Shown here: positions 11,779 through 57,634 of the stretch, piece by piece | Position numbering within the stretch: position 1 is the first letter of the stretch | Layout of the letters: every line of letters starts with the position of its first letter | Source of the DNA: Paragordius varius | Taxonomy: Eukaryota; Animalia; Nematomorpha | Direction of reading: 5' to 3' | Assembly: GCA_964247055.1 (NCBI GenBank) | Contig: OZ176057.1 | Location: forward strand, 4,588,001 to 4,652,000 | Length of the DNA stretch: 64,000 nt | Made by a program: the position numbers and the translations under genes | Notes under the pieces: generated by a model | What the model was told of the DNA's origin: nothing | The model's database searches: none | What the model saw: the letters and a program-made list of their open reading frames with translations, nothing else

Positions 11779-14700
11779 ATTATAATGTGGTATTTATAAA
11801 TAAGACAAAAAATAGTGGACCCCGTCCCCCCTGTTTTTCATAATGTGTTTCTTTTTAAATTGTACATAGCGTTTACAGTTAAAAATTGAAATAATACCGA
11901 CAAAGGGTAAAAATATTAGAACAAGTATTATTTTTTTGCAAAAACAACCCCATACTTTTTTGGAAGCTTAATGGTAAAAAAAGGCATGGTTGTCTTTTGA
12001 AAAAAAACGTGTCTTTTCATAACGTTTTGTCAGTGTATTTTCAATTTAAATTTTTACTAGAATAAAATTATGTGGATAATCTCATGTAATTTTCAGTTCA
12101 AAAACAAGGGATCTTAGTTTTTTAGGTGACGTCCTTTACATTTATTAAAATTTTTATAAATTAGTATTTGTTTAAAAACTCATCAAATAACTAAATAAGG
12201 GGAGGGGGGAGGTCCATTGAATTAATCGTGATCTAATTACTTGAGAAATTATATATTTGGAAAGAATTTGCGATAGAGTTATGGAAGAAATAGATATTAC
12301 CCAAAGCCTGCAAAATGTAAAATATTATATAAAAATAATATATAAATCCAAAAAATTTATAATAAGGAAGTTACTTTAATATTACCATTTGCACTTCATG
12401 AATGTTCTTAAACAATATAGGACCAAATTGAAATGTTCAAGGACACTTTTGAAGTGCAAATGTAATAATTAGATTCAAACTTTTTTTAGGATAAGCTTAA
12501 ACAAAATTTTATAAATTTAGATTTAATCGTTTATATTAAAATTGAAATTATACAAAGGATAAAACGTTAAATCAAAATGACAAATAGTTTTTTCGTTGTA
12601 CTATTTAAACTTATTTTTTTAAATTAATTTATTGTTTAAAATGCAAATTATAGTGTAGACACTTAAATTGGTACATTCGATTGTATGCTACAATTGTAAT
12701 TAATTTATGTGGTTAGAAGGAAAAAAAGTCTAATTATTGTTTGAAAAAATTATTTTCTCTTAATATTTTTACGTTTTGTCTGGTAATTTTAATGTTTACT
12801 GGATTACCGGTAAATCATAATTGAATTTGATATACACTATGCCTTTTAATGGTTGCTTATTTGACACTATAGTAGGTCAAAAAACAGTTGTGTATGGAAA
12901 AAACAATTATTTCTCTTCTTTTTTCCAAACACTCCTGGGGTTGCGAATAGCCCTACTATAGTGTGAAATAAGCAACCATTAAAATGCACACTGTATAAAT
13001 ATATATATATATATATATAAATTTCAATTAGTTATATCTAAAAAATAGCAAATTATAAATTATAAAAACCTTAGGTCTAAAAATTAAATTTACTGTAAAC
13101 GTATCATCAAACCCATAATCTTCGTCTGCAAAAATGAATGAACTCTCATACTCCTTCAGACATTCAATCAGATGGTTGTCTTCATTTTCAATTGAAATAT
13201 AACTAAATATTTTTTTACAAATTTATTTTTTTAGATTCTAATAATTTTTCCCCCAAAAATAAATCTTTTAGGTTCTAGTTTTTAATTATTTTTGTATTAT
13301 AATACCATATCTTTATACTTCAAATTCACCCTCAAACAATTCAAATTTCTTAAACAATTCGAATTCACCTTCGAACAATTCAAATTTACCCTTGAACAAT
13401 TCAAATCATCATTGAACAATTCAAATTCACCCTCGAACAATATAAAATCCCTTGAACAATTCAATTTACCCTTAAACAAATTATGTCTGTGTTTTTAAAA
13501 GTTGAAAAAACCTATATTTTATGATATAACAAATTAAAATTTTGTTTAAAATTAAAATAAGGTTGAAAAAAAATTTGTTAAAGGGTGAATATTAATTCTT
13601 TAAGGGTAAATGAATATGTTTAGAAAAATAGCCTTCAAAAATGTATATAAATAATTTGTAAAAATAACCTTTATGTAATCTAATTTTCCGGCAAAATTTA
13701 ACAAATATATCCTTTATGATTCAAATAAAAAGTATATATTTTACAACAGTAAAAATTAAAATTATATGCGGACAAAACGTAAAACTATAAAGATAAATAA
13801 TATTTTAGTTTTCAAATGACAACCTCATAATTCCTTATAATACCATTTATTGTTCAAATTCACCCTTAAACAATTAAAATTCACCCTAAAAATAAATTAT
13901 GTCTTTTCACGCAAATATAACTCATCATTCATATAAATTATATTCTTATGGCATACTTTATTTTTTCAGTATTATATTAATTTTAAACAAAATTTCATTT
14001 TTTAAAAATATAAGAAAACATAGGTAAATTTTAATCTTAAAAAACATAAAATTTATTTTCGAGGGTAAATTTGAATTGTTCAAGAGTGAATGAACTGTAA
14101 ATGGTATATTTTTACTAAATTTAACACTTACTTAGCACTTTAACATATAACAATTGTGTTACCAATATACATCTCTATTTTACTTTGTAGTTAAACAAAA
14201 TTTATAAAGCATGAAAGTTGTTTGTTGTCTTTTCCAAAAAAATATTTGTCTTTAAATTTTTACGTTTTGTCCCGGATATAATTTCAATACTGTATTTATG
14301 GCAAATATTATTATAATAAAAAATTAGAAAAAGAAAAAAAAAAACATATTTATTTACAATGGTATTTTTTATATTTTAACACTTAAACACATTCATTTCA
14401 GTCATTCGATTCAAATAGGGGTAGTTACATACCCCATGCCTGTTTGAAATTAAAGAATTCAAAAAATGTGGAATCAATCGAAACCATGGCAAACATTTGT
14501 ACATTTATAACATTTATGAACCGAAATATATAAAAAATTTAATTCAAAAGTACTTGATATTACTTATTTCTAGGTAAAACCTCAAGGTAAAAATATAATA
14601 AATATGACATGTCTGCATTAGCTAAATTTAAGAATAATACATTTTTTTGTTTCTATCAATGTTAGATGTGATTTAGATTAAAAATAGGCTTTCATTTTAG

Positions 14701-36619: not shown

Positions 36620-36637
36620 CCAGTAAATTGATGAATT
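36620..36637 (-). CDS. Micro-exon 18 nt (EFINLL)
   Basis: cttttatag/gtatat. Confidence 0.55.
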
Positions 36638-39600
36638 CTATAAAAGAATATATAAATAATAGTATAATAAATTGTACAATAATATTAATAATAATGAATT
36701 CTATGATACTTAAAAAGATTTAATCAAATTTTATTATATGCTTTCTTGCCTTACCTTAAAATAATCAAATATTTTTTAGGCATTATTTAACCGGATCTGG
36801 AACATTGTCATATGCTGCCTCAATAAAATAAAATCTTGTAAAAATGATGGACTTGGAATTAGGGTCAACCATGATATTTTACTAATTTTAAGCAACATAT
36901 GCATTGCAATGACAAAATTTTCGCGTAAAATTAAATGATTAATTCATGAAAATTATAATATAAATTTTATGTTAAACTTAATACCATCATTTGTGGAAAA
37001 TGAATCCAAATTTGATTCTTTAATCAAATCACAGTAAAAAGTAAAAGTTAACGGACAAAAGGTAAAAATATGACAAAATTTTTTGCCGAAAGACAGCCAT
37101 ACTTTTAAATCCTGGTTATTTTAGATATAAGTGACTGTTTTAAAATGCAAGGTATAAAATAGCGATGTAAATTGATAACAGAATAAATTATGTATTTTAC
37201 CATTGTATTTTAATGTTTTTATAAGATTAAATAAAGTTTAAAAAAGTATGGTTGTGTTTGGAAAAAATGCCTTTTCACCCCTTTAAGGTCTAATTAATCA
37301 CATATGGTTAAATAAAAAAAGTTTTACGAATATTTTTGTTATGCTATATATTTTTGGGATAAAATAGTGTCACTCAGTCTTATATACATTGCAAGGGAAG
37401 CATTAAGATTCTATTATTTTGAATATTCAAAAAAAACGAAGGTTATTTCTATTAAAGCATTCATAATTTTTATGCTACTGAGTAAATAAGAATTTAACAT
37501 ATCGTACCATTACGAATCTCCAACATTCTTTGAATAACGGTATCCGAAACTATTATATTGATGAGAAGAAGCATAATTTAATAAAACTAATATGACTTGG
37601 TACTATTCTAACATGTAAAAAAAGTTGGTGGATTTTTCTTGCGTTTTCAATAAACTTTCCCATTGGAAAAGTCAACCATATAAAATGAGATTAATATTAG
37701 AATTGAGAGAATTATGCATTGTATTTAGAAATTTATTAAAAAAATTAAGCTGAAATGCGTACAACTATAAAAAATATATATTTTAATTTTCGACTTTTAT
37801 AGTAAAGTCTTTATTAAAAAAATATTAAATGAATTGTAACGTAATGCCTTATATAGTGTGATACAGGTAATTGATGAAAAAAACCAGTAACAGCAAAAAT
37901 TCTTGTATACTGGATCTTATTACGTTACAATTCATTTAATATTTTTTCGATAAAAACTTTACTATAAAAGTCGAAAATTAAAAAATATATTTTTTATATT
38001 TGTACGCATTTCAGGTCAATTTTGTTAATAAAATGAGATTAGTTTTTTGCCATGTACAGTTTCTGAAACAACATTATAAAACAGAGGGCCATACAATTAT
38101 ACAGCATAAAAAATTGTATTAATTTTAAAAAAGCTATTAAATGCTAAAAATAGTTGGTTTTTCTAGTTCGTTGTCAAATAAATAAATTATCCACAAGATT
38201 TGTTTAATTATCCATTTTAAAAGATTTCATAACCATATTTTTTCAAATTATGGATTCCCAAAATTTTAGCGGGCGGCCTATAAAAAATTGCTATAATTGT
38301 CAACAATGTGTAATTACATCCTGTCAATTATTTACTATTAACATATGCGCCACCCGTTTGGTCCTGAGATGGAAATAAATAAATAATTATTTAAAAAAAA
38401 GTTTGAAAATAATTATTTCTGGCAGCCGTCCAACATCTGAATAAGTAATACTAAAAAAGTAAGTTAATTTTCCGATGTTTTGCACACACATAAAACAAAA
38501 ATTGAAATTATACCGACAAAACGTAAAAATATAAAGACAAATTTTTTCTAGCAGAAAACAATATACTTTTTAAATCTTAAAGTTATTATATAACATAAAT
38601 TGTCTTAACTGTAAAGTATAAAATAGAGATGTATATATTAGTAACTTGATTAATTATGCCTTTTTCGATTATAATTAATTTTTTATAGGATAAATTAAGG
38701 TAAAAAAAAGTGTGATTGACTTTGGAAAAAAAATTTTTGTTTTTATATTTTTACGTTTTGTCCCCGTATTTAATTTCAATTATACTCACATATTGAATAA
38801 ATATATTCTTACAATGTATAAATTGTTCCGATACTAAATTAAATATATATATACAATTTTTTACATATTAATTGTTATATGTAATATATTTCAAGGATAT
38901 TACTGCGAGAAACGTGATCAGAACCTTTAGGGATAATTAAATAAAAATTAATAAATAGTCTCAACATTATATGATTGGAAAATATTAAAATAAATTTTAC
39001 ATTCCATGATATAACGGGCCTTTTCTAATCCATGTGTTAATAAAAATTTGATTTAATTAAAAAATAAATTCCTTTTTACAAAGTAATTATCAATTGATTT
39101 ATAGATATGAAGGAAATCTTACCAACAACTATTCGTACTATGATTAAATATGGTTGCATAATGATATATAATAAAAAAAATAGAATAAATTTTAAAACAA
39201 TATTTACCATTTACAGTTCTAAACCACCCTTAAACAATTCAAAATCACCCTTGAATTAAAATTCACCATAGAATTAAATTTATCTTCAAACAATTAATTC
39301 ACCCTAAAATAAATTATGTGTTTTTTAAGATTAAATATTACCTATATTTTTTTATAATTTAAACAAAAAGAAATCTTTTATGTAATCAAAAAAATACTGA
39401 AAATATAATAAACTTTGTAAATATAATTAATTTTAATGATGATTATATAAGACCGAAATTTCATAAATTATTTTTAGGGTGAACTTGAATTGTTCGAGGG
39501 TAAATTTGAATTGTTCAAGCGTGAATTAGAATTGTTCAAGGGTGATTTTTTATTCTAAATGTTATATATAAAAATACTTACGACTTTGACGGTCCATTTG

Positions 39601-39874
39601 CATCAATGCTAACAAAAATTAAATTTTTAAACAACTATGCATCATTTTATGATTGATAATATTTCATAACCTACTAAATGCAGTATTCCACTTTGGATCT
39701 TGGAAAAATTAAATAAGGTCATCAAACGTGAAAAAATGTGCATTTCAAAATTAAAATAAATATTTTAAATGAATACTTATATTTATAGCCTAACTGTAAT
39801 ATCAGTGTCTAATATAAATCAATTATTTTTCCTTAATTATGATTGATTTAATAAACGGGTATAATTGAATTAAT

Positions 39875-39915
<41 letters not shown>

Positions 39916-41445
39916 TTTAGAAATCCTACCGAGTAGTTACAACCATTTATTACATTGTGCCTTTTTTCGCTTTTATTATCTTCTTTGGATATAAAATAAG
40001 CTTAATTCTTTTATCTACATAAATTAGTTTTTGTTATAATCATATTACTATCACGACAAAAGAGCTAAATATAGTCCCATTAAATTGATAAAATATTCTA
40101 ATTTTCTAAAAAATTCGCGGCAAAAACCTTATTATAAAAGAACCGAATAGGGAAAGTTTTGCTATAAATTCGCTAACAGTCTTTAAACAAGCTCCCAATC
40201 ACCAAAGCACACCTAATTTTTTTACAATCAATCTCTACAGTCCACCAAAAAAATTTATCAATCAGGTTTTGTATGATTCCAACTGCTAAACAATATAATT
40301 TTTTTTAATTTAAAAAAGCACATTATTTTATAAGTTTTTTTTGCGCCTTATATTTTTTGACAATAAAATTGATTTTTTAAGGGATATCTATAGGAATTTA
40401 AAGATTACCATGTGAATAAAACAAAAATGTTGGAATTAGACAATTTTTTCTATCTACATTAATTCGTTTATAATATGGTGTAAATTTGTTTTATCCCAAA
40501 CGCAACTGTAAAGCAACAATAACGTGAATAAGCCAGCTAAATGTGTATTATGTAATGCAATTAAGAGTAAAATAAAAATAGGAATAAAATTTTTTAGATA
40601 AAACAAATAAATTCTTTCTGATTATGAGTTTGGAGGAAACTTCTACAAATAAATGGACAAACAAAATTCCTAACGCCATTATTTTAAATATAATTTTTCC
40701 GGAAAGGTTACTACTGGGTAGCCTAATACGAAAAAAACTCTCCTTTTTTGGCCACATTAGGAGATCTACTTGAAAAGTCACTGATGCTGGGAAATGAAAA
40801 ACTCGTTGTTAACATTTTTAAAAGAAACCTACCCATATAACTTAATGCCAGATCCGCTATTCGCAATGAATGGAGAAGTTATATTTTTAATGTTGGAGAT
40901 TGACAGAATCGACCTTAGTTACAACCCATATACTTTTTTATGTTTTAATATAGCTCCTTATCTAATGAAAAAGTATAAGTGTGCTATTATTTAAAAAAAA
41001 TTCTCTACATTTTGTCCGCATAAATTTAACTTTTAACTGAATTCTTCTAACAATAACACGATGGATACAATAATGACCTAATAAAGCGAACATTATTTAT
41101 GGTTAAATTCTTTGGATTACATCATACGCTTTGGTTTAAACAATTTATCTTTTCGTTAAAGTGCCATTTTTTTAATTTAATACCGATATTTTAATCTATT
41201 TTTGGTTAAAAAAATTCAATTTTTTTAATTATATTATAAATTTTCATGAGATATCCATATATTGTCTTGGCAGAAAACTTTGATCAACAAAACAAAAAAT
41301 GAGGGCAGGTCGATAGTATAATTTTATCTTGCATTTATAACTTTGTTGAATAACATTAATATTATAATGTAAAAATTACTTTGTACATTTCGGTTAACTT
41401 AAAAAGGAATAAAATAGTTAATTTATTTACCATAAAAATCAATTC

Positions 41446-41476
<31 letters not shown>

Positions 41477-44400
41477 AGGCTTATGGAAAAATTTTAACAA
41501 AATTTGCATTAATTATGAAATATTTACTTTCTTCAGGAGTCAAACGCGCTATATTAATATTATGTTATATTGACAAAAGATCCCACAAAAATAACACATA
41601 GATTTAAAAAAAATTAATTTTAACTTTGTTTATATATCAAACTTTCCAAAATCAATTAAGATACCCGAAGTTCCTGGCTGCTCATTACTTTGGGCTTGAT
41701 CTAAATGCAATTAATTTGGAGTTATTAGGAATAAAACTGTATAGATAACAATATAATGAATGATTGATATAACACACCCAATTATATATTGAGGATATAT
41801 GAAATGTGGGATTATATATTTTGTAAAAATAATTGTCCTTAAAGTATGACATTTTGTCACCTAATATATTTATGTGTCTATTGTAATACCAATATTTTAT
41901 ATAAGGTCTAAACATTTATTTATATGCATAAAATTGCCATATTTTATGTTCAAATCAAACATAGAATATTGAATAAATGATTATTTATGCTTTTATCAAT
42001 ATGATGAATAATTCTAATTTTAGTATAAGGTAATATTAATTACTTTGGCCTTCGCTACGAGATGTTGATGGCTCCTGATTATCTATGTAATTATGGAAAT
42101 AAAACCAGAATAGTACATGGTAAAATCAAATATCGGATATGTAGTTATAACATATTACCCTTAATAGGAAAAATCGTCAATAAAATGAATTTACACGGTT
42201 GATATGATGCGAATTCCACATTTTATTCACCTGACATCAAACGACATACACATATAAATTGAGTTTGCCAAAAACTATGGTCGTGTTAGTTACTATCATA
42301 CAACAAACATTAACCTTAAAAGTTTTGCTTTATTATTTCAAAGGCTGTTGAGAGTCAGATAGCTGGAAGAAACGAACAGTAATTAATGATATAAAAATGT
42401 GTAACATCATTTTGAAAAATTTAACATATGATTTCATGAGTATGCAATTTGGTATATTACGATTCCGCAGCCAATAGTTGGATAATGACTCACCTCATAC
42501 TATAAGTAAATTGGGGAACTCACTATATTATTTTAAAAACTCCTGGCTATCACAAAATATATGCTAAGTGGTATTTGCAAATTAAAAGCGAAAAAATGAT
42601 AGTACCTTGCCAAGCTTTACCATTAACAGGATAAATTACTTTGTTAAAAGACCATGCTCTGTGTCTGTGGAATCGACCAATATGTATAATTTTACGCAAA
42701 AAATTTTATTATTTTTTTCGTCCCGAAAAACCGGTAAAAACTTATGTACATGTGTATCTGATACGTTTATAGATTGATTGTTTTGATTAATGTTTTGCTA
42801 TTCCTTATTTTGATTTTGCCTCGCATTTTTTTTAATTTTTAATAGCTAATATCTAAAAACAGAAAGAGAATATAATTCGTCGTTTCAATTAATCAAATGT
42901 CTAAGAGATTATTTAATTCTTTCTGTTGACATATGAATGACATAAATAAATAATTTCATTTAAGCTATTGATATGTATTTTCATATGCCCTTATAGATAA
43001 TAAAAACAATGAAGAATTTTACCATATGTTAATATTAAAAAATATCAGGAGCACTATTATAGGCTATATCTATTTTTCCTTTTCATAATATAACACAGTA
43101 TTTATTATCAATTTTTTGCACGCGATAACATTTTGGGATAATTTATACCTTGGACATGTAGTAAACGAACCACTGTTTGAATATCGTTTTAGTTAATATA
43201 TAAAATTTCGCCCATATCTAAAAAAATAATTTTTACAGCTTTTTATAATATATCCAAATTTGGATGGATGATAAAGGCAAACAGCTGATAATGACTGATT
43301 AATAAAGAACTATGACAAGTGATGAAAGTGTTCATATTTAGTGTCAAAACAATAAATAGCAAAAATATTCTAGTAAATTGTAAGGCTTAATGTTGATAAA
43401 TTGTGTCCAACACGTGTTCGGACTAAGCAAAAGTGTCAAAAAAGTTTAATAAAATCGAAAAATTGGATTTGATCAAATTTTTTTATTTATTTGGAAGATA
43501 TAAGCGAAATTGGGCTTATAAAAAAATAAAAATTACCAAAAAAGCCAGCGTAGATATTTACGTTTGGACACCCTAGTTTTAATAACCGGTATCAAACTAT
43601 ATCAAAAGTTCTTGAGGTGATAATTAAATACTTTTTCTCCAAATTTTACACAAGAAAATAATTAAAAGATAATTATTTTGTATGTTTTTGATCGCATATG
43701 CATACCATTTAAAATATAGTATATAACACTTATTGGTTCTTGAAAATTTCAAAAGTGACCTTGAACATTTCAAGTTTGTCCTTAATTTTTTAAGTTTGCG
43801 CACAATCATAATTTCCGCATGTATTCACCTATTAATTTTTCTTTAATTTTTAATAATAATAACATTTTTTTGTTCCGAACAAATCTTAATCCACTGTGTC
43901 ATCAATAACAAAAAATTGCAATACTAACTTACATATTTATTCAAAGCTTGTTAAAATAAATTAACTTTTTTGAGAAATTAAGAAAATATTCGGTTTTAAA
44001 AATGAAAATAATTTGAAAGTTTAGTAATAATTATAGGTTTAAAATGAGATGTATATATGATACATGATTAATAAAAGTTAGAATCTATAAAAATGTTAAA
44101 TGACCAAATTAAAATGTTCACAAGAACTAACATAAAGTTCCTAACCTAACTTTTTCAAACTATCTTTTTATCCGTTTAAATTAAATCTTATATACCTCTA
44201 GAAGTGGATGGTTGGTCTATACAATAAATATCTTTAATGTAATTAAAATTTATACAATTATTTTAATTGTTTTTTTCAACAATCAATAAGGGTCAAAATT
44301 TGCAAAATATATTAAAATTAAATTTAAGTCCAATAAATCTAAAATATGTGCAGTATTTTTTAGCATAATTCACGCCACAAATAAAAATATTTTTATAGAG

Positions 44401-45616
44401 ATTCCCAAAAATTTAGTTTATTTAATATCACTATTTTTCTTTAAGGCTAATAAATTCCTCAATGAATCCTTCAAAAAGCTCATATTTTTTTAAACCGTAT
44501 CTATATATTTATAAAGATGGAAAATGCTGGATTTGTGATCTGGCACAGGAAAACCGATAGACCCATTCAAATCCAAACTTCGAAATATAATTATTAATGA
44601 ATGGCCCCACAATAACTTTGTCCTTCTTTTGAAATAGGTCCCCAGTTCAGGCCCACCCCATAACGGTTTTTTTTGAAAACTCCACAAAAATTGTGTCTTT
44701 AAGACAATTTTCTGGAGAATGTGTTGGTCCATTCTATTTCAAATATATTTTTTGTTTATTTTTGATCACGCTGAACATAGTCGTCTCGCTTTTTTGATTT
44801 AGGCCCTATTTTTACCCGCTTCCCCCGTAAAATGCCATTTTTTACAATCTAAGTCTACAAAAATAATTTTTTAAATCTATTTTTCGACCAAGGTATGAGA
44901 CCGTAAAAATTATATATGGATTCCACGTATTCCCTGTTAAAAAACAAAAATTTTAGTCAGGCATTTCTTTGTTGATAGCTGCTGGGTAAGGAGCTACCCG
45001 CTAAAAACTGATTCCTCATGTAATTTTGTGATCTGTTTCCGGAAAACCGGTGAACCCAATCAAATCGAAATATCGAAAATATATAATCATCAATGAATGC
45101 CCCGACAATAGCTTCGCCCTTTTTTGGAATTAGGTCCCCAGTTCGGGCCTACCCCGTGTGAAAAATGGGTTAAGTCAATTTTTTGGAGAATGTGTTGGAC
45201 CCTTCAATTTCAAATATGATTTTTGTTTACTTATTTTAGATTGCGCCGAACATAGTCGAGTCACTTTTTTGATTTAGGCCCTGTTTTTACCCGCTCCCCC
45301 ATAAATGCCATTTTTTTCAAAAAAAACAAAGTTCACAAAAATAATTTTTTGAATCTATTTTTCGACCTAAATATGAGACCATAAAAATTCAATATGGATT
45401 CCACGTATTCCCTCTTAAAAGGCAATTTTGGTCAGGCGTTTCTTTGATGAGAGCTGCTGGGTAAGGAGCTGCCCGCTAAAAACTAATTCCTCATGTAACT
45501 TTGTGATCTGTTTCCGGAAAACCGGTAGACCCATTTAAATCCAAACTTCGAAACCCCCCTTCCTAAAATTCCGAAGGACTTCCTCGGGCTGCGTAGCAGC
45601 ACCAGATTTACGCTAG

Positions 45617-45648
<32 letters not shown>

Positions 45649-48600
45649 TTGAAAAACATTAATTAAATCGTAAAATACATATTTGATGTTACCAATTTAC
45701 ATTTCTATATTATACCTTGTAGTTTTAAATAATGACTATTTTTAGGATTTTAAAGTATGGTTGTCTTTTCAAAAAAAATTGTCTTTAATTTTTATATTTA
45801 TCCGTATAATTTCAATTTTTGTAAGCCTAGATAGTACCTTGAGATGTGGATGGTCGAGGTTCCGCTGCTATATCCAATAAAAATCAATTACATTTGTAAA
45901 ATCATAAATTAAATCAATGCAATATTTTTATCAATCGGTTCTGATTAAGAAAAATGTTATTCTTTTTTAATAATGAAATTTTATGTAATAATACTTATCT
46001 TGAGGTTTAACTGGTGTTTTTAGTTATAATATATTCTGTTACTTTATGACCTGATATATAAAATGTACTTAAATTAACCCTAATGAAAAAAATCATATAA
46101 AAAAAATGTTGCTTTTAAATAAGAAAATATAATGTTTTAGCTAAAAATTGTTGCATTTTGGTTAGGTAAATATTTGCGTTAGCTTGGAAAAGTGTCGGAG
46201 TTTATATAATAATTAAGACTTTTAAAAAATCTAAAAACATATTAGGATTCAATTAAGTGGATAACGACGAGGATTTGTAATGTTAAGAATGTGGAAATCG
46301 TAAAATAACGTGAAAAATTTTTATTAGGAAAATCCAAGTTTGCTAAAAACTATTAAAAACATCTAAAATTTAATATATTAATTTAGTATTATGCTTGTTT
46401 TCAAAAATACCTTGAAATATATCAACCATTTCTAAAAAGGGCAAATATGATAATTTATAGTACGACATGTAAATGTTTATAGCAAAAATATAATTCCTCC
46501 AAAAAAATATACCTTGAACTAAAAATAAAAAAAATAGCTGTTACCCTAAAAATATTTTTCTGCAATTTATTTTATATATATTAAGAATTAATATCAGGGG
46601 TGTCCAATGTATAGCCCTCATATATATTTTGTATACGGCCTATAAATTTAATAATTTTTAATTTGCAAACATATGTTAAGATTTTAGTAATGATATTACT
46701 TAATTACATAAATTTCATGAAAACTTCTATATGGCAACGAATGATTATACAATTGTTATATTCTGCATTTTAAAGTCTTTTTCTAATAAAATATTTATAA
46801 ATGTCCATGCCAATTTTAAATGCGTGTGACCCGCAAAATAATTTGTGTTGGACACCTCTGATTTAAAAAGTATAAAAATTACTTACATTCAGGGCTAAAT
46901 TTTTTTCCAACGGCTAAAATAATTAGGACAAAAACAATTCTTCACATCTATAAATCTCGCTTAAACCCTACTCAAATAAAAAACTCTATATATGCACATA
47001 TATACACACATATATATATAAGTAATAAAACTATCGTCAAAAGTAATCACAGATTTGAATCGATATTGATTTTTAAGGGGTAAAAATCTGTAAAACAACA
47101 TACCAGTTGGGGGAGTTATATCTATATATAAAATTTTTTAACAGAGGGTATATTTTATTATAAGCCTTTATTTTGCATTTTTAACCAATCTTATAGAAAT
47201 TTTATTTGTGATATCATTTATAGTAAGTAATCTATTTTTATATATTGTCCATATTTAAATTTTATTAAAATTATGCTTATTTTGAATTATATTTGATAAA
47301 ATATAACATTTACAATATTGATTTAACCATTAAACAGATATATATTTTTAATGTGTTCTAACATGTAACCAGATATATCTTTTTTTTATTTAAAAAACAT
47401 CAGTCTAACCCGGTTTTTCTAACCAATTACCATGAGATGTGGATGGTTTAGGTTCCAATACTGTACGATATAAAAGTGTGATATTAGAATATAACATATT
47501 TTATCAATTGTTAATTAAAAAATGTGGCGATGATTTAAAAAAGTAAGAAAGAGATTTTTGTTGGAAAACATTATTAACCTTGAGTAGCAGACACGGAATC
47601 TATAAATTATACATATGTACTTAAGTAATAATTAAACAGGTAAACGTTGTCGAAAAAATAATTACACACAAAAAAAATCGTAAGAATTATAATATAAAAT
47701 GGATGAGGGTGAAAAAAGTTAAATTTTTTAAAGAATTTTTAAGCTGATGTTTGAATGGATTGATAATAATTAAAGGTTTTGATAAAGTTTGCAATAATGA
47801 TGAAAAAATGTCATTATATATTGATATTTGTATGTGAAATATTTTTGAGTCCAATACCAGAGAATTTATATTATACAGCTAAAGTTATTCTGAAACCAAA
47901 AAAATCGTAGATATTATTTTTAGAAAACCACTTTTTACCTACTACCACACTGCCCTTTTGCCCAATTCATATGGCATCGCGGGCTTTATTTTTAACTTAA
48001 AAATTCATACAAGTCATGAGTATTCATAAATAAAGTTTAACAGAGGACTGTAAAGTACTAATACAGTATAACAATTTTTACTGATTCGTTAGGAATCGAT
48101 ATGTTCCCAAAATTAGTTTATTAAATTTCGATTTTATTTATATATTTAAGCAAATAATTGCAAACTCGGGCCGCATATTAGACATATTTCAATAGATTAT
48201 CAACTGGAAAAATATACCAGCTGGGCGAGTTATATCTATAAATGAGAAATAGTTTAAACAAAATAATCATAAAAGTTTTTGCTACAAAAGTTTGAATTTA
48301 AACAATCTTATCGTCTAATTTTCAATTTTATCTGATTTATCTATCACTTTTTCCATTTCACCATTTTATGGCGATTTGAACAATTTTAGTTTAATCTAAT
48401 TCATAGCCAAAGTTTTCAAAGATAGAAGGTTTAAGATAATAATTTTATTCAAATTTCAATTTTGTTAGAGGCAATTTCTCGCGAGCTGCTTAAATATTTT
48501 AAAGGTGGGCGCGTGTTTTCATGGCTGCCGTGGATTTAAATTCTTATTGCACTTGAAGGGATGCCAATTTAAATTAATGTTTCACAATCCTTATCTTGTA

Positions 48601-49739
48601 TAAATAACCCCATATAATACCGATCAAAATTTTATAGATGTTTGACAGATTGGTAAATAATTATACATAAAATAAGTACATGAAAAATTAATAAAAAATA
48701 ATTATTCAGGGCCTAAAACCACTTTTAGGGCCGAATATCGCTCGTGGGTCGCGGTTTGAGTACCACTGGTGTGGCTTTTTAAGCTATAAACGGAAGATTT
48801 AAATATAAAATTGTCTGTATAATGTAAAATTAACAATGATGAAATTATATGCACAAAGGCAGAAAATATATGAAACGTTTTTTTTTCATATTAACCACTG
48901 GGTGCCTCAGCAATATACAGTAAAAATTGAAATTATGCTGACAAAACGTAAAAATATAAAGACAAATATTTTTTTTAATGGCAACAATACATTTTTTTAT
49001 ACTTTTTTTAATATAAATGATTGAATAAAATTGCAAAGTATGAAATAGAGATGTATAATGGTTAAACAATCAATTATATATTTTATTGTAATTAAATAAT
49101 TAATATGGGAAAAATTAGCGTTTAAAAAAGTATGGTTGTCCTTTGAAAAAAATATTTCTCTTTATATTTTTACGTTTTGATCGCATAATTTCAATTTTTA
49201 CTGTATCACCAAAAAATAATTACGTTTAATTATTTTATTTGTAAATTAAACTCGGGGTACAAATATATAAAGATAGGGGTTTCGAAAAAATTTAAAGTCG
49301 AACTAAATTAATTGATTTTTGGGTTTTTTATGTGAAAGGCAAAAATACAGTAAAATTTAAAAGTATACGGACAAAACGTTTAAATACAAAGACAAATATG
49401 TTTTTTAAAAGAAAAACATACTCTTCCTTAAATTTTCCCTCATAAAAATTAAAATTTTGAAATACTACCAACTCTTCTCTATTTCATACTTTGCAGTTTC
49501 AAACAATGAAATCTATTTAAATAAATCCATATCTAAAAAGTATCATTAGTTTTTTTAAAAAAATATTTGCCTTCATATTTTTACGTTTTGTCCATATAAT
49601 TTCAATTTTTACTCTAATTTCAAACATATACCCTACCTCTAGATGTAGATGGCTGTGGTTCCATAACTAAATTTTTTATTATAAATATGTGATCCAAATT
49701 TATATCTTTCTAATAACACAAACTTATGATTCTCGATAA

Positions 49740-49796
<57 letters not shown>

Positions 49797-52700
49797 ATTA
49801 CTGTAATAATATTCATGCCATATAGCTACTATATTATTCCTCAATTGGGAATCGTTTAATCACATCTTTAGATTTTTGATAAAAGATTTCTTTCGACTAC
49901 TTGACCAAAATTGACAGAATTTTTTTAAAAGATTTTAATGATGATCTGGAGAAAAATATTTATTATATTTTGTTATAAATGACTTTTCCAATTATTTCAT
50001 CCCAAAAGGTTGAATAATATAAAATTATTTGTTGTTCGTAATTTGACATTTTAAGTATTTTTACAAAAGATTTTATTTGAATAATATTATAAAGTATTGG
50101 CATTTCATTCGGTTTAGATTTTTAAATTTTTACAGTCTTTATTTTGTTTTAAACGTTTCACCATAAGAAAATAAACGAATCTTAAGACATTTTTTGAAAA
50201 GTTACAACATTTTTAAAAGAGACTAATAAACCTTGGGAAGTTGATGATTGGGCATCCATTTCTGTGTAATAAATTTAAATTTTTTAAATTAAGGCTGTAA
50301 TCCCGAGATTCGGTTAATAACTAATAATCCTAATAGGAGCGAACCTTATGTTAAAATCAGCTACGGTTTCTTTTTTTAAAGGCTTTTTTTAAATTAAATA
50401 TTATAATGATAATATAATTACTGTTGAAAAATAATTTCACAGAAAAAAACAGAAGCTTTTAAAGGTTTTAATCAGAATATAATTAGAAAATTAACATTTT
50501 ATTACCTATTTGGATAGTTTTATATCCTAGAGCGTTTTATAGTTTACATATCAAAAAGCATTTATGGTATGAGATCAAATAATTTGGATTCTGGTTTCTT
50601 TAAATATTAAGTGCATGCTTGGATTTTTTAAAAAAAAATATTGTAAAAATATCCTCTTCTCAAACTTTTGCCACCATTTTTTTCTACAAAAAATCAAGGC
50701 TAATAAATGTTAAATAGGTTAAAAAATTCAAATAATTGACTTGAGAAAGCTTTCAGAGTATTTTTATCATAAAACACTTGACATTGATTGATTATAAAAT
50801 CAGATGGTTATTTAAATCATTCTAAGAAACTGCCGCAATCAGAATCAAGAAGGAAATAGTATAGGCTTTATATATAATACAGGACATCAATGTTTTAGAA
50901 CTAAAACAAACATTTTTCAAAACCCTATTTTACCAGATAAAATTATGCGATATAAAACTACTCCAAAATGTCATGGTGTAAAAAAGTAAAAATTTGAATT
51001 TATGGCATAAGAGCCAAATTTTTTTAGTTATTTAAATCTTGGAATTAGGACTATTATTAACTGGCTCTGGTTCAAAAAGAAATTAGGCTTCCTCTTTAAA
51101 AATTAAAGAGTCACTTCTTCTGGCCGAATTATTCAATAAGTTTCTAAAATATACGCGTGGTAAAAATTGAGATTTTTCTACCCTTTAATTACTGATCGAT
51201 ATTAAAATATACTTTCTGAATAGCCATACAGTAATAAAATTTTTTATATTAAATCTTTGTTAAAGTTTAATTACTTAATTGCTAGTTTTTTATTTAAAGC
51301 TATGGGCCAAACGCAGATAGCCACTGTTCCATACATTTGTATGAACTCCCTTTGCCCTCTATTTATTGGAGGTACAATATTTATTATAAATAATTTTCAG
51401 TTTATTCTTATAAAAATCCCCCAAGAAAAATTCTCAATAAGACATAATCTATATTTGTATTAATATTATATATAATGTATTGAATTTACCTAGTTTTGGA
51501 CGCTTTGGCTCTATTTAATTATATAAAAAATATGATTGATTTCAAAAATGCTCTATTTATAAATTATATATATCATCTTATAGCTGAAGGCTTTAAAAAT
51601 AAATGCGTTTGACAATCTTAAAAAAAATTATTTAATTTTTATTGCATTTAGCCCACATGAAAAAATCGCATTCTTGTCGCACATTAGATCGGACAAAATA
51701 AAGTACAAGGGAGAAAAACGCCTAAACAAAATTTTATTTGATAATATTAGCCATAAGAATATTTTTAAACGCAAGAAATCAAAAAACATTTAAAAAACTT
51801 TGGCGTCTAATTATATTCTATAAATTTGTTATTTTGAAATAAATTTATATTTGTTTAATAGAGAAATTACCCAATATATCGCGTTTAAAAATATAAAAAA
51901 GAATTGCAATTCGCACCAAAATGGGATTACAGTATAGCCAAAATATATCATGTATTTTACTTATATAATTCGATTTAAGCAAAAACATCTATTGACTAAT
52001 TATTCATGAATTTTTTATGAGAATTTGGGTGCAAACTATAAAAAATTTCTAAACTCGATATATTTATATAGGGAATAAACACTATATATATGATTGTTGA
52101 AATAAAATTAGATGTTTACCGCAAAATAACAAGTTTAACGAATGAATTTGACGCCATGCGTTTTTTAGCATTTTCCGTTAGGGAAAAAATTTTAATAACT
52201 TTGTTTCCAGATTGTCAACCGCATTTATTTTTGATATTTATTATCCTGAAGGTTTTAGCAAATTGAGCATTTCAGCCGCGCACCTTATAGTTATTATTCC
52301 AAAAGTTTCATAAATGTAATGTTTAACCCAGTGCTTCCATATCAGATTGAGACCTTTTAACGGCTTTAGCAGAGTCCTGATTTTGACCGTTTGCAGCCTT
52401 TATAACCGAATTTTGATTCTTGTCAATATTTTTCCCCTTTATACTCGTCTTTTTGGCTTTACGAGGGACTGGGACCTCTGTATTGGGTTTAGTAGGATTT
52501 GGAGATTCGGTAAGATCTTGAGTATTTATGTTTGAGTCAGACTGGGATGATATTGTCGGGCCTTCACTTGGTTCCGCATGTGTAGACGAAGATGATTTAC
52601 GTTTCATCGCGAGGGGTGAAAAGGCGGCGGGTGCAGCTAAGCTTTTGGCTCCGCGGGCAACTAGCTTGGGGTTATCGGTTAAAATTTGTTTTCCCGTATC

Positions 52701-54594
52701 AACCAGTGAACTGCTTTGACTTGGTTCCATCACTTGTGTTTCTGCGCTATTTACCGTAAAAATTGAAATTATACAGACACAACTAGTACAAATATAAAGA
52801 AAAATATTTTTTTCCAAAAGAAACTATACTTTTATTAACAACCTTCTAATACATACATTTCTATTTCATAATTTGATATTAAAAACAATAAGTTATAATT
52901 ATATGGATTTAGTTTGGAAAAAGTAAAATTTTACTGTATATCTTGTCCAACAAATGTGTCTGATGTTGCTTGACTCAAACTCGTGCTTTGTTCAGGTAAG
53001 GATGATTCAAGGCCTTGTTGTTCCTCAATCGCCTGTAAAGCATTGGAAGATGATGGGGACTGTTCTGTTCCAGCATTAGTAACAACAGTTTCAGTTTCAA
53101 CTTCAAGGCCCTGAGCCATTTGACTTGAAGCCTGACCCGCGGCAACTTCTGTAGCCACCACGGTTTCTGCGGTCTCAAGAGCGCCCGCTGCAACTGAAGT
53201 AGCCACTGCGCTTGTACTGGCCACCGCGCCTGTGGTCGGGATAACCGCACCGACAGCAACAGCTGTTCCGGCTACAACTATGGGAGACGGTAAAAGATAG
53301 CGCGTAAAAATTGAAATTATATACGGACAAAACGTATGTAAAATGATAAAGATGATAAAATTTTTAACCTAAAAGGCAACCATACTTTTTGAATCTTCCT
53401 ATATTTATATACAACTGAATATTTTAAACTGCAAAGTATAAAATAGAGATATCGATTGGTAACACAATCCATTATGCATTTTATGATTGTATTTAAATCA
53501 TTTTATTTAATGTTTAAGAAATTATGGTTGGCTAATGAAAAAATTTTGTCTTTATATTTTACGTTTTGTCCGTATAATTTCAATTTTTGCATTTATATAT
53601 ATTATTTGTATATGAACGATAGTATATGTTTAAAATTTATTTGAAGGTGACTATTTTTATGTTCCGTCTTTAAAATAATAAAACAACTGCTTTAGCATTT
53701 TTAACCCTAAAATTTAATTTAATTTTAACTTCGAAACTATCCTATATGAAACTAATTACTGTCAAATTGCCCCAGATATATATTCCATTGTAAATAAGTT
53801 AAATTAAAAAATTTCATATTGAGAATAGTTTAAATTTACCTCCACCAGTGATACCTGGATTAACAATAAATAATAAAAATAAATTTTTAAAATAGAGCAA
53901 AATATTTTTTTAAAAAACACAAATTATATACCAACTGCAATTTTTCCAGGGGTCCATTTCGTTTCTGTCATTTGTTTTTCTATTGGTGTACCACTTTGAT
54001 GATTATAATACGAATGTGCTGAGGTTGGTGCTTTTAATAAATGGATATGTGACATGTTTTTTTTTCATATATTAAAAATGGTTAATAAAATAGGTTATAT
54101 CATACTAGCTTTGGGTTTACTCTTCTGTGGTTTTGTTGCATTCAAACCTAAAAATTAGATGATTTATATGGAGTCAAAACTTAAAAAATAAAAGACAAAT
54201 AAATGATAAAAAAGATAATTATTTTAAAAGAGTAGTATCCCTCGCAGCCCACGGCCACATTCTGCCCTCCAAAATTCAGCAGCCCACGAGAAATTTAAAT
54301 ACATAATTTTACTAAATCTAAATAAAATTCTTTTTCTTAACAAATTTTCTGAATAAGTCTTTTCAAATGAATGTCGGCATAGATAGTAATTTTAACAATT
54401 TTTTGTTTGAAATAAAATATTTCTTGATTCCTATATATTTTGTGATTTTAAATATAAGTCATTGTTTTAGGTCGCATAAAGGGGAATAGAGATGTAAATA
54501 TAATTTAATAGAGTAATTATATGGCATATGTGGGTAAAATCAAGGTTGAAAATATGATTGTCGCTTGGAAAAAAATATTTGTCTTAAAAATTTA

Positions 54595-54676
<82 letters not shown>

Positions 54677-57634
54677 ATTTATATATATATATTTAATGTA
54701 CTAAATAATTAATTTATTTGGTTATTTGTTTTTGTACTTGGATTGTTAGCAGGTGGCGTATTTTTCGACTCATGATTTCTTGATGTATTGGAATTTGAGA
54801 AATGCCCTAAATATAAAGGATTTAAAGCAAATATTTATTATTAGGAGATAATATAATTTGTTATTCGATGATAAATTTCAAATAAAAAAATGTCATTTTA
54901 AAAATGTGTAATTTTTTTGTTATATTTTTATTTAAAATAAACTTGATTTTGTACAGCCCTACTTACATGGAATAATCATTTATTTAAAGTTATTGGTATT
55001 TATATCATTTCACAACAAGTTAATCTTTAGTTTGATAATTTAAAACAACTAACCTTTTTTTATCACAATGATGAAAATGGGATATGCTTAATAACATTTA
55101 TCTTGAACGATTTCAAAATAGTTTATGCATTTTAATGGTCGCATATTTGACACTATAATTGGGCAATTTGCAACACACAGTAGTGTATGGAAAAAACATA
55201 AAAATGTTGAATTTACAATATCCTTTCCTTTTTCCATACCCTACTTGTGTTGCAAATTGCCTTACTATACCAATAAAAGGCATGTATATGCATATTTTTT
55301 GCAGGAATCGCCACATTAAAAAATTTCATTTTTATTTCTTATACATAGCTAACCTATAATTATAGGATTTACATGCTTTATAAGTTCTATATAAATAATT
55401 TATTCTTACGATTTTTCTCAATAAGCTTCGGATGCTTTATTGTAGAATCTATAATAGATGAAAATTTGACATTCCTTACTTGGACTTTTATTTGATGAAT
55501 CATGTCGTTTTCGCTCTAAATAAATTTTATTTAAAATTATTTGGTGTCTTTTCTATTAATAATTTACAATTACTTTGATGTTTACACAAAGTTTTGATAT
55601 TATAAATTAAATTAATGTCTGTATTTTTTTGACACCATTTTATTAATGCTCTTTTGAAATCAGGTCCAACCATTACCGAGACCGTTTTAAAAATAAAACA
55701 TTAAAATTTTTTTAACAAATCATTACCTCTAAAAAAACAGTAAATAAAATGCTAAAAATTAAATAGTATGAAAAATTATGGGAAATTAAACTTTTTTATA
55801 TAATTGACATAAGAGTTAAATGTTTTACAGTAAAAAGAATTAAAATTATTTAAATACACATTATAATATTTTGTATAATTCCTACATATTACATCCAATT
55901 AATTATTATTAATGAAAAGATGCGTTGTAAATCTAATCATTAATTATAATCTAAAATATATATGATATAATTTATTATTTGAAACACAACTTATAATATG
56001 TCGATAAAAAAAATTAACAAGATTAAATTATTAAGTAATTAACCTGATATAGAAAAGGGCTTTATAGCTTCTACGAGCTTTTTGTTTTGTGGTGGTTCTG
56101 TAAAAATAGCATTTGGTAAATTATAAATCTAATAATATGCATTATATTCATTCCTTTAAATCAAAGATCAAACAAATATTTTTTAATTCTGAATCTACCC
56201 TTCATATATATTTTTAGATTTCTACTACTCAATTGATTTTTTTGGTAAACCATATTTCAACTACTTAATTGTCATAATTTACGAATTCTGATGCAATATA
56301 CAGTAAAAAATTGAAATTATACCGACAAAAGGTATATAAAGACTATATTATTTCTAAAATAAAACCATACTGATCTAGATTTTTTTTCAATACAAATTAT
56401 TTTTCAAAATAACAAGGATGAAATAGAATTGAATATTGGTAACAATCAATTTTATGTTTTATAATCAGAATTAAATAATTATATGAGATAAACTAAGGTT
56501 TAAAAAAGTAGGGTTTTATTTTAGAAAAAATTTTTGTCCTTATATTTTTACGTTATGTCCTTATAATTTTAAATTGTACTGTATTTTGAACCGTCGAGTT
56601 TTGTAAAACTTAGTAAATATTAAAATCTAGATGATTTTCTCCTTTATACTACTATTTTTTTGTTTAAACACTTCTTAAATTAGGAATATTTTTATTGAAT
56701 CTAAAAACGCAACATTTTAGGTATATACACTGTGATATAATTCCTTTACCATAGAAAGTATTTTAATTGTTAAACATTTTTAAATTACGAACAAAGAAAT
56801 ATTTTTTTTAATTGTTTAATACATGGTGGCTACACCTTCATTTCAGTTCTTCGATATCGGGGTAATTAGATACCCCATTATTTAATATTAAATATTTTAA
56901 AAAATATGCAATAAATTAAAACCAAAGCAAATGTTTGCACTATAATAACATTAATGAACCGAAACAAAAAAAATCATTTTAAAATACGCTACTTATTCAG
57001 GGGTAAAACCCATAACATAAGTACAAAAATAATACGAAATTCACTTTTTTATTTCAATGTTAAATGTGAATATAAATAAAATCCTAATTTAGAGGCTTAG
57101 AATCTAATAAACAGATATTTTGCAAAAATGTTGTAAAATAAAAAAGGCCAAGTAATTTTATATGTAATTTTTTTAAAACTAAATTTTATATTTCGGCTTG
57201 TTATATATTAGGATAGACGCATAAATTTATATTGAAACTGTTTCTTGCAATATTTTTTCAGAAATAATTTAAATATTGTCGGGGGTATTTGGATACCCCA
57301 ATTTCAAAAGTGTTTAAAGAAAATACACTATAGGCAATGCTTTAAGGTACACAATAAATATACGATAATAAAAAATTTATTTTATAAATTATAGAAAACT
57401 AAAACTGCAAAAAATACGAATATTCTGAATAAATTTCGAAATAAAAAATTATATTAAACGTGGCGGTAAAAACAAGCAATGGACCAACTTAAAGAAGTGG
57501 TCAAAACAATTGAATTATTTATAGTGAATAGTCTTGTTAACATACCTTAGGAATTAAAAATTAAGTATTAGATGGTATAATTTATCTTTCTAAATAACTT
57601 AAAAACTTTTGATTTATTTGTAACGTCGTATCAG
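36620..57634 (-). CDS. Novel multi-exon micro-exon gene (core span): Gly/Ala/Val hydrophobic segment, S/T/Q/E-rich low-complexity region with PSTS repeats, possible folded C-terminal domain; start and stop not fixed
   Basis: More than 30 short GC-enriched islands bounded by T-rich AG and GT on the minus strand. Nearly all are phase 1-1 and 3n in length, and they join without stops to two large open exons. Manual prediction. Confidence 0.75.
36985..37017 (-). CDS. Micro-exon 33 nt (ESNLDSFSTND)
   Basis: attaaag/gtatta, phase 1-1. Confidence 0.52.
37508..37549 (-). CDS. Micro-exon 42 nt (xSDTVIQRMLEIRN)
   Basis: ataatag/gtacga, phase 1-1. Confidence 0.6.
37749..38015. mobile_element. Hairpin MITE with about 100-bp inverted arms, TTAA/TCAA flanks
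   Basis: Arms 37749-37845 and 37919-38015 match at roughly 90% by eye; loop about 70 bp. Confidence 0.75.
38343..38363 (-). CDS. Micro-exon 21 nt (xPNGWRI)
   Basis: tttccatctcag/gttaat; frame link to 38813 unresolved. Confidence 0.5.
38813..38833 (-). CDS. Micro-exon 21 nt (ISEQFIH)
   Basis: taatttag/gtaaga. Confidence 0.62.
38904..38924 (-). CDS. Micro-exon 21 nt (GSDHVSR)
   Basis: cctaaag/gtaata. Confidence 0.6.
39123..39137 (-). CDS. Micro-exon 15 nt (LRIVV)
   Basis: aatcatag/gtaaga. Confidence 0.7.
39582..39608 (-). CDS. Micro-exon 27 nt (TLMQMDRQS)
   Basis: tttttgttag/gtaagt. Confidence 0.72.
39675..39698 (-). CDS. Micro-exon 24 nt (xPKWNTAF)
   Basis: tttttccaag/gtaggt. Confidence 0.62.
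40600..40920 (+). mobile_element. Decayed RTE LINE 3' fragment
   Basis: IRKKLSFFGHIRR, frameshifted LEKSLMLG, RNEWRSY. Confidence 0.78.
41528..41548 (-). CDS. Micro-exon 21 nt (ARLTPEE)
   Basis: aatatag/gtaaat. Confidence 0.7.
41665..41700 (-). CDS. PSTS-family micro-exon 36 nt (NQAQSNEQPGTS)
   Basis: gcatttag/gtatct. Confidence 0.8.
42044..42082 (-). CDS. PSTS-family micro-exon 39 nt (DNQEPSTSRSEGQ)
   Basis: tacatag/gtaata. Confidence 0.8.
42606..42638 (-). CDS. Micro-exon 33 nt (VIYPVNGKAWQ)
   Basis: ttttaacaaag/gtacta. Confidence 0.48.
43149..43172 (-). CDS. Micro-exon 24 nt (VVRLLHVQ)
   Basis: caaacag/gtataa. Confidence 0.55.
44196..44216 (-). CDS. PSTS-family micro-exon 21 nt (DQPSTSR)
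   Basis: ttgtatag/gtatat. Confidence 0.8.
44500..45616 (+). mobile_element. Complete non-autonomous Helitron with about 2.1 internal tandem units (493 and 475 bp periods)
   Basis: A|TCTATATATTTATAAAG 5' end; GCTGC-GTA-GCAGC hairpin at 45588-45600; CTAG|T 3' end; no TSD; GTGATCTG landmark at 44535, 45028, 45503. Confidence 0.9.
45838..45867 (-). CDS. PSTS-family micro-exon 30 nt (AAEPRPSTSQ)
   Basis: atatag/gtacta; a NAGNAG acceptor also allows 27 nt. Confidence 0.85.
46411..46431 (-). CDS. Micro-exon 21 nt (EMVDIFQ)
   Basis: cctttttag/gtattt. Confidence 0.6.
46513..46518 (-). CDS. 6-nt micro-exon candidate TTCAAG (xQ)
   Basis: long poly-T + ag / gtatat. Confidence 0.5.
46887..46913 (-). 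CDS. Micro-exon 27 nt (AVGKKFSPE)
   Basis: attttag/gtaagt consensus donor. Confidence 0.72.
47104..47121 (-). CDS. Micro-exon 18 nt (DITPPT)
   Basis: atatag/gtatgt. Confidence 0.8.
47431..47460 (-). CDS. PSTS-family micro-exon 30 nt (VLEPKPSTSH)
   Basis: cgtacag/gtaatt. Confidence 0.85.
47579..47599 (-). CDS. Micro-exon 21 nt (DSVSATQ)
   Basis: tttatag/gttaat. Confidence 0.7.
48218..48235 (-). CDS. Micro-exon 18 nt (DITRPA)
   Basis: tttatag/gtatat; paralog at 47104. Confidence 0.8.
48918..49203. mobile_element. Family B MITE (Tc1/mariner-like ends; TIR CAGTAAAAATTGAAATTATACGGACAAAACG), representative of roughly 30 copies
   Basis: Long imperfect TIRs, TA TSD, about 285 bp. Other copies approx. 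32-375, 1310-1570, 6338-6665, 7445-7742, 9538-9813, 9988-10290, 10935-11226, 11877-12058, 12535-12800, 25905-26193, 29205-29471, 30930-31163, 31437-31710, 36235-36516, 37033-37270, 38500-38785, 49348-49614, 53301-53591, 56301-56581, 59537-59785, 63670-63910. Confidence 0.9.
49637..49666 (-). CDS. PSTS-family micro-exon 30 nt (VMEPQPSTSR)
   Basis: aatttag/gtaggg. Confidence 0.85.
50232..50261 (-). CDS. PSTS-family micro-exon 30 nt (EMDAQSSTSQ)
   Basis: tacacag/gtttat; homologous to 49637, 47431, 45838. Confidence 0.8.
51335..51358 (-). CDS. Micro-exon candidate 24 nt (EGKGSSYK)
   Basis: aaatag/gtatgg; needs a further exon before 50261 to avoid a junction TAA. Confidence 0.42.
51490..51510 (-). 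CDS. Micro-exon 21 nt (EPKRPKL, NLS-like)
   Basis: aaatag/gtaaat, phase 1-1. Confidence 0.72.
   Translation of the reverse strand, partial: SQSVQN
52328..52746 (-). CDS. Large exon 419 nt (HAETQVMEPSQSSS...SQSDMEAL)
   Basis: GC-rich open frame, acceptor taaatag, donor gttaaa; phase 2-1. Confidence 0.83.
52747..52934 (-). other. Predicted 188-nt intron formed almost entirely by a MITE insertion
   Basis: Starts GTAAAA inside the TIR (CA|GTAAAA) and ends TAAATAG 7 nt past the MITE; splicing restores the frame. Confidence 0.72.
52754..52936. mobile_element. Family B MITE, internally deleted copy, inserted in coding sequence
   Basis: Ends CCGTAAAAATTGAAATTATAC / TTTTACTG, TA duplication on both sides, internal homology to other B copies. 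Confidence 0.85.
52935..53277 (-). CDS. Large exon 343 nt (VVAGTAVAVGAVIPTTG...SDTFVGQDI)
   Basis: GC-rich open frame, pyrimidine tract ctcccatag; donor GTAAAA lies inside a MITE terminal repeat; phase 1-2. Confidence 0.85.
53840..53854 (-). CDS. Micro-exon 15 nt (GITGG)
   Basis: aatccag/gtaaat; links KIAV to VVAGTAV, forming one hydrophobic segment. Confidence 0.75.
53932..54030 (-). CDS. Exon 99 nt (TPTSAHSYYNHQSGTPIEKQMTETKWTPGKIAV)
   Basis: ttaaaag/gtatat, phase 1-1; an in-frame ATG at 54055 is an alternative start. Confidence 0.7.
54106..54147 (-). CDS. Micro-exon 42 nt (SLNATKPQKSKPKA)
   Basis: tttttag/gtatga, phase 1-1. Confidence 0.7.
54598..54672. repeat. (TA)n microsatellite, longest in window
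   Basis: Uninterrupted TA run; others at approx. 49744-49794, 39878-39912, 11740-11774, 11388-11415, 6799-6830, 19729-19754. Confidence 0.95.
54738..54806 (-). CDS. Exon 69 nt (RHFSNSNTSRNHESKNTPPANNP)
   Basis: atatttag/gtacaa, phase 1-1. Confidence 0.7.
55480..55515 (-). CDS. Micro-exon 36 nt (ERKRHDSSNKSP)
   Basis: ttatttag/gtaagg, phase 1-1. Confidence 0.68.
56044..56097 (-). CDS. Exon 54 nt (xPPQNKKLVEAIKPFSIS)
   Basis: tttttacag/gttaat, phase 1-1. Confidence 0.62.
57599..57634 (-). CDS. Micro-exon 36 nt (xDTTLQINQKFL)
   Basis: tttttag/gttatt, phase 1-1. Confidence 0.4.

Follow-up and report, generated by a model that had tools for sequence, protein, structure and literature searches.

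A probable array of duplicated micro-exons, one short motif per exon, in a minus-strand locus of the hairworm Paragordius varius

Large exons and micro-exons of the locus

The window analysed is a stretch of 64,000 nt of the Paragordius varius genome (contig OZ176057.1, positions 4,588,001 to 4,652,000) with a GC content of 24% and scattered GC-richer islands. Its minus strand carries, over at least ~54018 to 41528, what is probably a genuine protein-coding gene, specific to its lineage, with a tail made up of a duplicated array, one motif to each exon, as judged from the organization of the sequence. The 5' half consists of two ordinary exons and the 3' half of about 13-15 micro-exons of 6-39 nt, from 51510 to 41528, separated by introns of 0.1-2.1 kb which contain MITE-like repeats. 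All gene features below are on the minus strand.

The two large exons proposed in an earlier note on this DNA were found where it had placed them, with AG and GT borders. Large exon 1 (53277-52935, 343 nt) enters in phase 1 and leaves in phase 2; its GC content is 0.52 against ~0.23 around it, and its product is Ala/Val/Thr/Gly-rich, then turns into an acidic Ser/Gln-rich segment. Large exon 2 (52746-52328, 419 nt) enters in phase 2, opens with a PSTS-type motif (VMEPSQSSS), contains basic clusters and ends with ...GAA GCA CTG G|GT (...EAL + G), i.e. in phase 1. Removal of the 188-nt intron between them (52934-52747) puts both exons in a single frame. Five differences were seen in exon 2 among the DNA runs, four synonymous and one Ser>Thr. 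If about a quarter of random changes are taken as synonymous, the chance of at least four out of five is ~0.016 by our own arithmetic, and this mostly synonymous variation argues that the large exons are coding.

In a BLAST search against the window, the 188-nt intron turned out to be mostly a MITE-like (miniature inverted-repeat) element: the ~90 nt at its 3' end match the terminal repeat of one such family, and the acceptor AG coincides with the end of the repeat. This family has about 40 copies in the window, in both orientations (families D6, D11-D13 and D15). The same repeat end is also found 25 nt upstream of exon 53277 and directly past the donors of exons 49666 and 45867.

Upstream of the large exons, a candidate 5' coding exon (54018-53932, 87 nt) is open in phase 1 only and ends in G|GTATAT. 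It contains an in-frame ATG at 53971 and joins exon 53277 in frame (G+TT = Val); in the contiguous DNA the first in-frame stop upstream is at 54067, with another ATG in between. A further candidate exon of 15 nt (53854-53840, GITGG, bounded by AG|...G|GTAAAT) is a multiple of three in length (3n), open in phase 1 and similar in composition to the start of exon 53277. The start could also lie at ~54055 or still further 5', where 54147-54106 and 56097-56044 are candidates. A GC-rich island located ~200 nt 5' of the candidate first exon (54223-54295, minus) contains CGTGGGCTGC twice in identical form, at a distance of 35 nt; with at most one mismatch, this sequence has 3 matches in the window for 0.14 expected, and the pair could be a promoter element.

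Each of the peptides that the earlier note had read from the tail was recovered on the minus strand, in a short island with AG before it and GT behind it. The most upstream of these micro-exons is EPKRPKL (51510-51490, 21 nt), a singleton with a donor score of 9.2, an acceptor score of 2.4 and a GC content of 0.48. It is followed by two 30-nt exons of the PSTS family, EMDAQSSTSQ (50261-50232) and VMEPQPSTSR (49666-49637), and by DITRPA (48235-48218, 18 nt) of the DIT family. Next come DSVSATQ (47599-47579, 21 nt), a singleton with strong sites (acceptor 8.3 and donor 5.8, given by a matrix not trained on it), VLEPKPSTSH (47460-47431, 30 nt, PSTS family) and DITPPT (47121-47104, 18 nt, DIT family). 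AVGKKFSPE (46913-46887, 27 nt) is a weak candidate, with matrix scores of 2.2 and 2.5, and the 6-nt exon TTCAAG ('FQ', 46518-46513; acceptor 4.5, donor 9.6) is a speculative one: it was picked for frame rescue and is similar to the 3' end of the following exon, EMVDIFQ (46431-46411, 21 nt), itself a singleton with a donor score of 8.5, an acceptor score of 3.0 and a GC content of only 0.24. The PSTS family then resumes with AAEPRPSTSQ (45867-45838, 30 nt), DQPSTSR (44216-44196, 21 nt, i.e. 9 nt shorter), DNQEPSTSRSEGQ (42082-42044, 39 nt) and the diverged NQAQSNEQPGTS (41700-41665, 36 nt). The singleton candidate ARLTPEE (41548-41528, 21 nt) is the last in phase before support ends.

All 15 core micro-exons are 3n long and begin and end in phase 1. 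This symmetry would allow inclusion of most exon subsets, and the exons, which would be spliced into one mRNA, may be used to vary the number of motifs through exon skipping. Their open frame is the one left by the end of exon 2. Skipping is not wholly free: unless the 6-nt exon intervenes, the final T of exon 46913-46887 would form a TAA stop at a direct junction with 46431.

Three features of the introns were recorded. In the segment 48790-49784, word depth in all four DNA runs climbs from hundreds to 10^5-10^6, from which we conclude that it is a very high-copy repeat; it makes up most of the 1.4-kb intron from 49637 to 48235, the paralogous intron being 309 nt long. In the same intron, a 64-nt GC-rich island (48720-48783, minus; GC 0.52) has the best acceptor of the locus (gtttatAG, 10.4), but phase 1 is closed by a stop; the island may be an alternative exon that breaks the frame, or may be of no significance. 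The intron from 45838 to 44216 contains, at 44470-45620, a ~478-nt unit repeated in tandem about 2.3 times, its copies being 86-89% alike and their GC content ~0.43, an array not reported by Tandem Repeats Finder. These repeats were considered as exons or as a nested gene and rejected, having no open frame on either strand.

Paralogy and extent of the array

Nine of the micro-exons are paralogues, seven being of the type (E)PxPSTSx and two of the type DITxPx. As had been claimed, these nine exons, found by homology and without a frame filter, are all 3n long and in phase 1, the phase set by exon 2. Their lengths are 18, 21, 30, 36 and 39 nt and the differences are always multiples of 3. AG and G|GT are kept at homologous positions and the intron flanks are unalignable; within the P-S-T-S core, three of the four variable columns are third codon positions. 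A DNA pattern made of the PSTS core and its donor gave 5 matches for 0.00 expected, and one made of the DIT exon and its two splice sites gave 2 for 0.00, all on the minus strand and in the locus; since both patterns were derived from the same data, the matches show that the repetition is real and do not constitute an independent test. By read depth in the DNA runs the array exons are single-copy, and they are covered by no dispersed repeat. The marks of an exon-duplication array, namely paralogous exons, a conserved phase and a homology that fades into the introns, are all found here. Conserved splice sites, 3n length changes, variation of the coding type and continuity of phase uphold the proposal of a gene invisible to ORF finders and endowed with a run of symmetric phase-1 micro-exons.

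In the DIT pair, about 200 nt of the upstream intron are ~60% identical, versus 16 of 18 positions (89%) in the exon. This diverged intron common to the pair points to the duplication of a block formed by a PSTS and a DIT exon, followed by free divergence of the intron. The array would have grown as single exons, and at least one such two-exon block (PSTS exon + DIT exon), were duplicated, each duplicated exon adding one short linear motif, (E)PxPSTSx or DITxPx. The repeat motif is also present inside the large exons (EQSPSSS and VMEPSQSSS), which ties the array to them; it suggests that the gene had the motif first and that the array extended it. Exon 47460-47431 reads VLEPQPSTSQ in other contigs, one of them a second form present in the best-matching sample; the two variant positions, 47449 and 47432, change K>Q and H>Q, in each case towards the consensus of the paralogues.

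To delimit the array, we used a splice-site matrix trained on the homology-defined and large exons only. Further candidates were found at 10.2 per 10 kb in 52328-41500 (minus strand) versus 1.7-4.4 in seven unrelated control segments; the flanks 41500-36000 and 58000-53278, with 3.6 and 4.2, are at background. Candidate density in the core is about three times that of nine other segments. The earlier note had reported dozens of exons over more than 20 kb (36620-57634) and had proposed a comparison with randomised sequence. With its own loose criteria (AG-3n-GT, phase 1), there are 47 islands in that span, against 26-29 in three real-sequence controls of equal length and 20.6 ± 5.5 in resampled sequence. 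As ~27 phase-1 3n islands are expected by chance and the flanks are at background, a count of dozens over more than 20 kb is unsupported, and about half of the 21 kb is retained. Four to six of the array exons are singletons chosen by phase and length, and some of them score poorly.

Upstream, one possible exon, at 55264-55217, lies inside a palindromic repeat also found at 9058-9177. This repeat, at 55113-55359 and 9058-9293, displays mirror-image ORFs on both strands (...FPYTTVCCKLPNYS...). Downstream of the array, part of the stretch is a dispersed 21-nt satellite. Its tandem unit, AGGGTGAATTTGAATTGTTCA, forms arrays at 39476-39549, 4135-4404 and 13319-13441, as well as in at least ten other places in the window, and yields long spurious ORFs on both strands at 4105-4522.

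The predicted protein and alternative readings of the locus

With the ATG at 53971 as start codon, the joined exons would encode a conceptual protein of 390 residues or more, which has a pI of 4.9 and no Cys, nor any Tyr after Met; Ser (14%), Ala (11.5%), Thr (10%) and Gln, Glu and Pro (8% each) dominate its composition. The motifs would be added to a protein that is acidic, Cys-free, Ser/Thr/Pro/Gln/Glu-rich and probably disordered. With a start at the ATG of the candidate exon (the upstream ATG is also possible), residues 10-28 (KIAVVVAGTAVAVGAVIPT) have a Kyte-Doolittle hydropathy of 1.87 and are followed by AVA|S, which looks like a signal peptide or an anchor only if the candidate first exon and the ATG at 53971 are right. 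Because of this N-terminal hydrophobic stretch, itself dependent on the candidate first exon, we infer that the protein may be secreted or surface-bound and O-glycosylated. Three basic clusters, KRPKLE, MKRKSSSS and PRKAKKTSIKGK, which resemble nuclear-localisation signals, speak for a nuclear protein and against a secreted one. Two other functional readings of the sequence were dismissed. The 10 SQ/TQ sites represent no enrichment over the 7.8 ± 2.3 expected from composition, and the PSTS motif as an SPOP degron fits the consensus in one exon only (AQSST).

Exon 2 had no match at E <= 0.001 in an exhaustive phmmer search of 1.84 billion representative proteins and none in a word-indexed protein search, and exons 1 and 2 belong to no Pfam family. 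An exact metagenome scan with the 3' end of exon 2 gave no match, the Atlas feature scores (0.72 at most) were at chance level, and Rfam and tRNA scans of the window found no structured RNA. As the protein database does not return even the window's own 775-aa ORF, the absence from it of transcript-derived proteins is uninformative. That ORF (19956-22283, plus strand) is uninterrupted and has hydrophobic stretches; it has no Pfam family and no relative in the word-indexed search.

The four sequencing runs that were aligned are genomic DNA, as shown by contigs colinear across exon-intron borders (e.g. 51662-52510, without differences). The joints listed in them all fall within the high-copy repeat, at 48974-49588. 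Words of exon 2 were searched for in RNA-labelled runs of the same species label and none was found; a run with another species label contained 6% of them.

One alternative is that exon 2 is the last of the gene (...DMEALG, with the stop at 52325-52323), the array being a rarely used alternative 3' extension or a separate transcription unit. A TAA is indeed present two codons past the exon 2 donor and AATAAA occurs 80 and 93 nt downstream, so that exon 2 could be a terminal exon; AATAAA is, however, common by chance at 24% GC. The array, for its part, has no better upstream partner, its first exon (EPKRPKL) has no in-frame start codon, its phase is that of the exon 2 end, and the PSTS motif it repeats is also in exons 1 and 2. 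These properties make an ending at exon 2 unlikely. Two other 3' ends can be drawn. One, at ~42355, uses the acceptor at 42363, which has a strong pyrimidine tract, and reads AI-stop and then AATAAA; the other, at 42036, comes from exon 42082 when its donor is left unused, reading ...SN and stop. All three possible ends precede the last in-phase exon, and the gene may also extend past 41528.

The small exons might also be unused or decaying copies of exon fragments, that is pseudo-exons kept alike by gene conversion and not by selection on the protein. The K>Q and H>Q variants of exon 47460-47431 move towards the paralogues, as conversion would have it, and the start of exon 2 resembles a fused PSTS unit. 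The copies, however, do not form a tandem repeat: they are scattered across 9 kb with unrelated exons among them, and their flanks have diverged past alignment, yet AG, GT, frame and 3n length are all kept, with lengths differing by 6 or 9 nt and never in a frame-breaking way. We consider pseudo-exons an improbable account of the array. Still further down the scale is a chance pattern, or a motif belonging to a transposable element, in which case the islands would not be exons at all: the loose AG-3n-GT phase-1 filter does give 26-29 islands in any 21 kb of this DNA and the introns are rich in MITE-like repeats, but the motif patterns, with zero matches expected, were found in this locus only and on one strand, the read depth of the exons is that of single-copy sequence, and no copy elsewhere in the window covers them. 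Such an origin is very hard to credit.

Comparison with known micro-exon systems

In schistosome micro-exon genes (MEGs), most of the coding region is made of micro-exons and all the products have a signal peptide; alternative splicing is documented and the genes are said to be restricted to platyhelminths (PMC4350168). The likeness to MEGs that the earlier note had put forward stands for the architecture, i.e. small symmetric 3n exons separated by far longer introns, any subset of which could in principle be skipped without a frameshift, and for an orphan product invisible to ORF finders. It does not extend to the sequence, with which we found no relationship, or to the proportions: where MEGs are in majority micro-exonic, the supported micro-exons here account for 369 nt, against 762 nt for the large exons and ~40 nt for the first one, and thus for ~31% of the coding sequence that has support, a share that would be larger only if the further exons of the earlier note were real. 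Nor could the gene be placed in a described MEG family, exon 2 having no protein match and exons 1 and 2 no Pfam family. On this comparison the nearer analogue is not a MEG proper but Schistosoma VAL-6, which combines a conventional gene with a MEG-like part and for which recombination with a MEG is the proposed origin (PMC4350168). In both genes a conventional part is joined to very small symmetric exons; VAL-6 has the known SCP/VAL domain, whereas the gene described here has no known domain, and its array, sharing a motif with the large exons, would have grown from within the gene.

Another parallel is offered by the bicycle genes of aphids, which have ~17 exons on average, nearly all of them micro-exons starting in phase 2 (in the convention of that paper), and which code for secreted salivary proteins with an N-terminal signal peptide and paired, Cys-containing CYC motifs (PMC9168663). 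Many tiny internal exons of a single phase are common to both, and bicycle proteins are fast-evolving and without detectable homologues; the present gene differs by its phase (1) and by the lack of Cys, hence of CYC (Cys-Tyr-Cys) motifs. Arrays with one repeat per exon are also found in the titin PEVK exons, the schistosome polymorphic mucins (SmPoMuc) and the chicken BG heptad exons, where symmetric exons are duplicated in a disordered or extended segment and copy number can change via duplication and skipping. Compared with those, the present exons are smaller (18-39 nt) and have unrelated micro-exons among them, and the (E)PxPSTSx motif was matched to no described repeat. A literature search retrieved no paper linking 'micro-exon' and 'hairworm'.

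In the literature, micro-exon genes figure as a speciality of flatworms that live as parasites, the effector genes of aphids being a structural parallel. If a second parasitic phylum had a similar design, this would point to convergent evolution and to a class of genes overlooked when such genomes are annotated by standard means. It is conceivable, though we hold it to be doubtful, that the hairworm lineage independently evolved the flatworm-type design; skipping would then dial the copy number of (E)PxPSTSx, one motif per exon, and so set the valency or the glycosylation load of a secreted or surface protein meeting the insect host, the locus being one visible instance of a class of nematomorph micro-exon genes that is genome-wide and as yet undescribed. 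Whatever its function, the locus displays a route by which such an array can grow, a motif of ordinary exons being extended as single exons and a two-exon block are duplicated, in introns swollen by MITE-like repeats. It also makes a compact RT-PCR target on whether hairworms vary a protein by exon skipping.

Elsewhere in the window, ORFs on the minus strand at 4433-5185 resemble retrotransposon fragments. One of them has a PHD finger (Pfam E = 4e-05) and the ORF beside it ends in a ...RLRYYGHIQRM segment similar to the tails of LINE reverse transcriptases.
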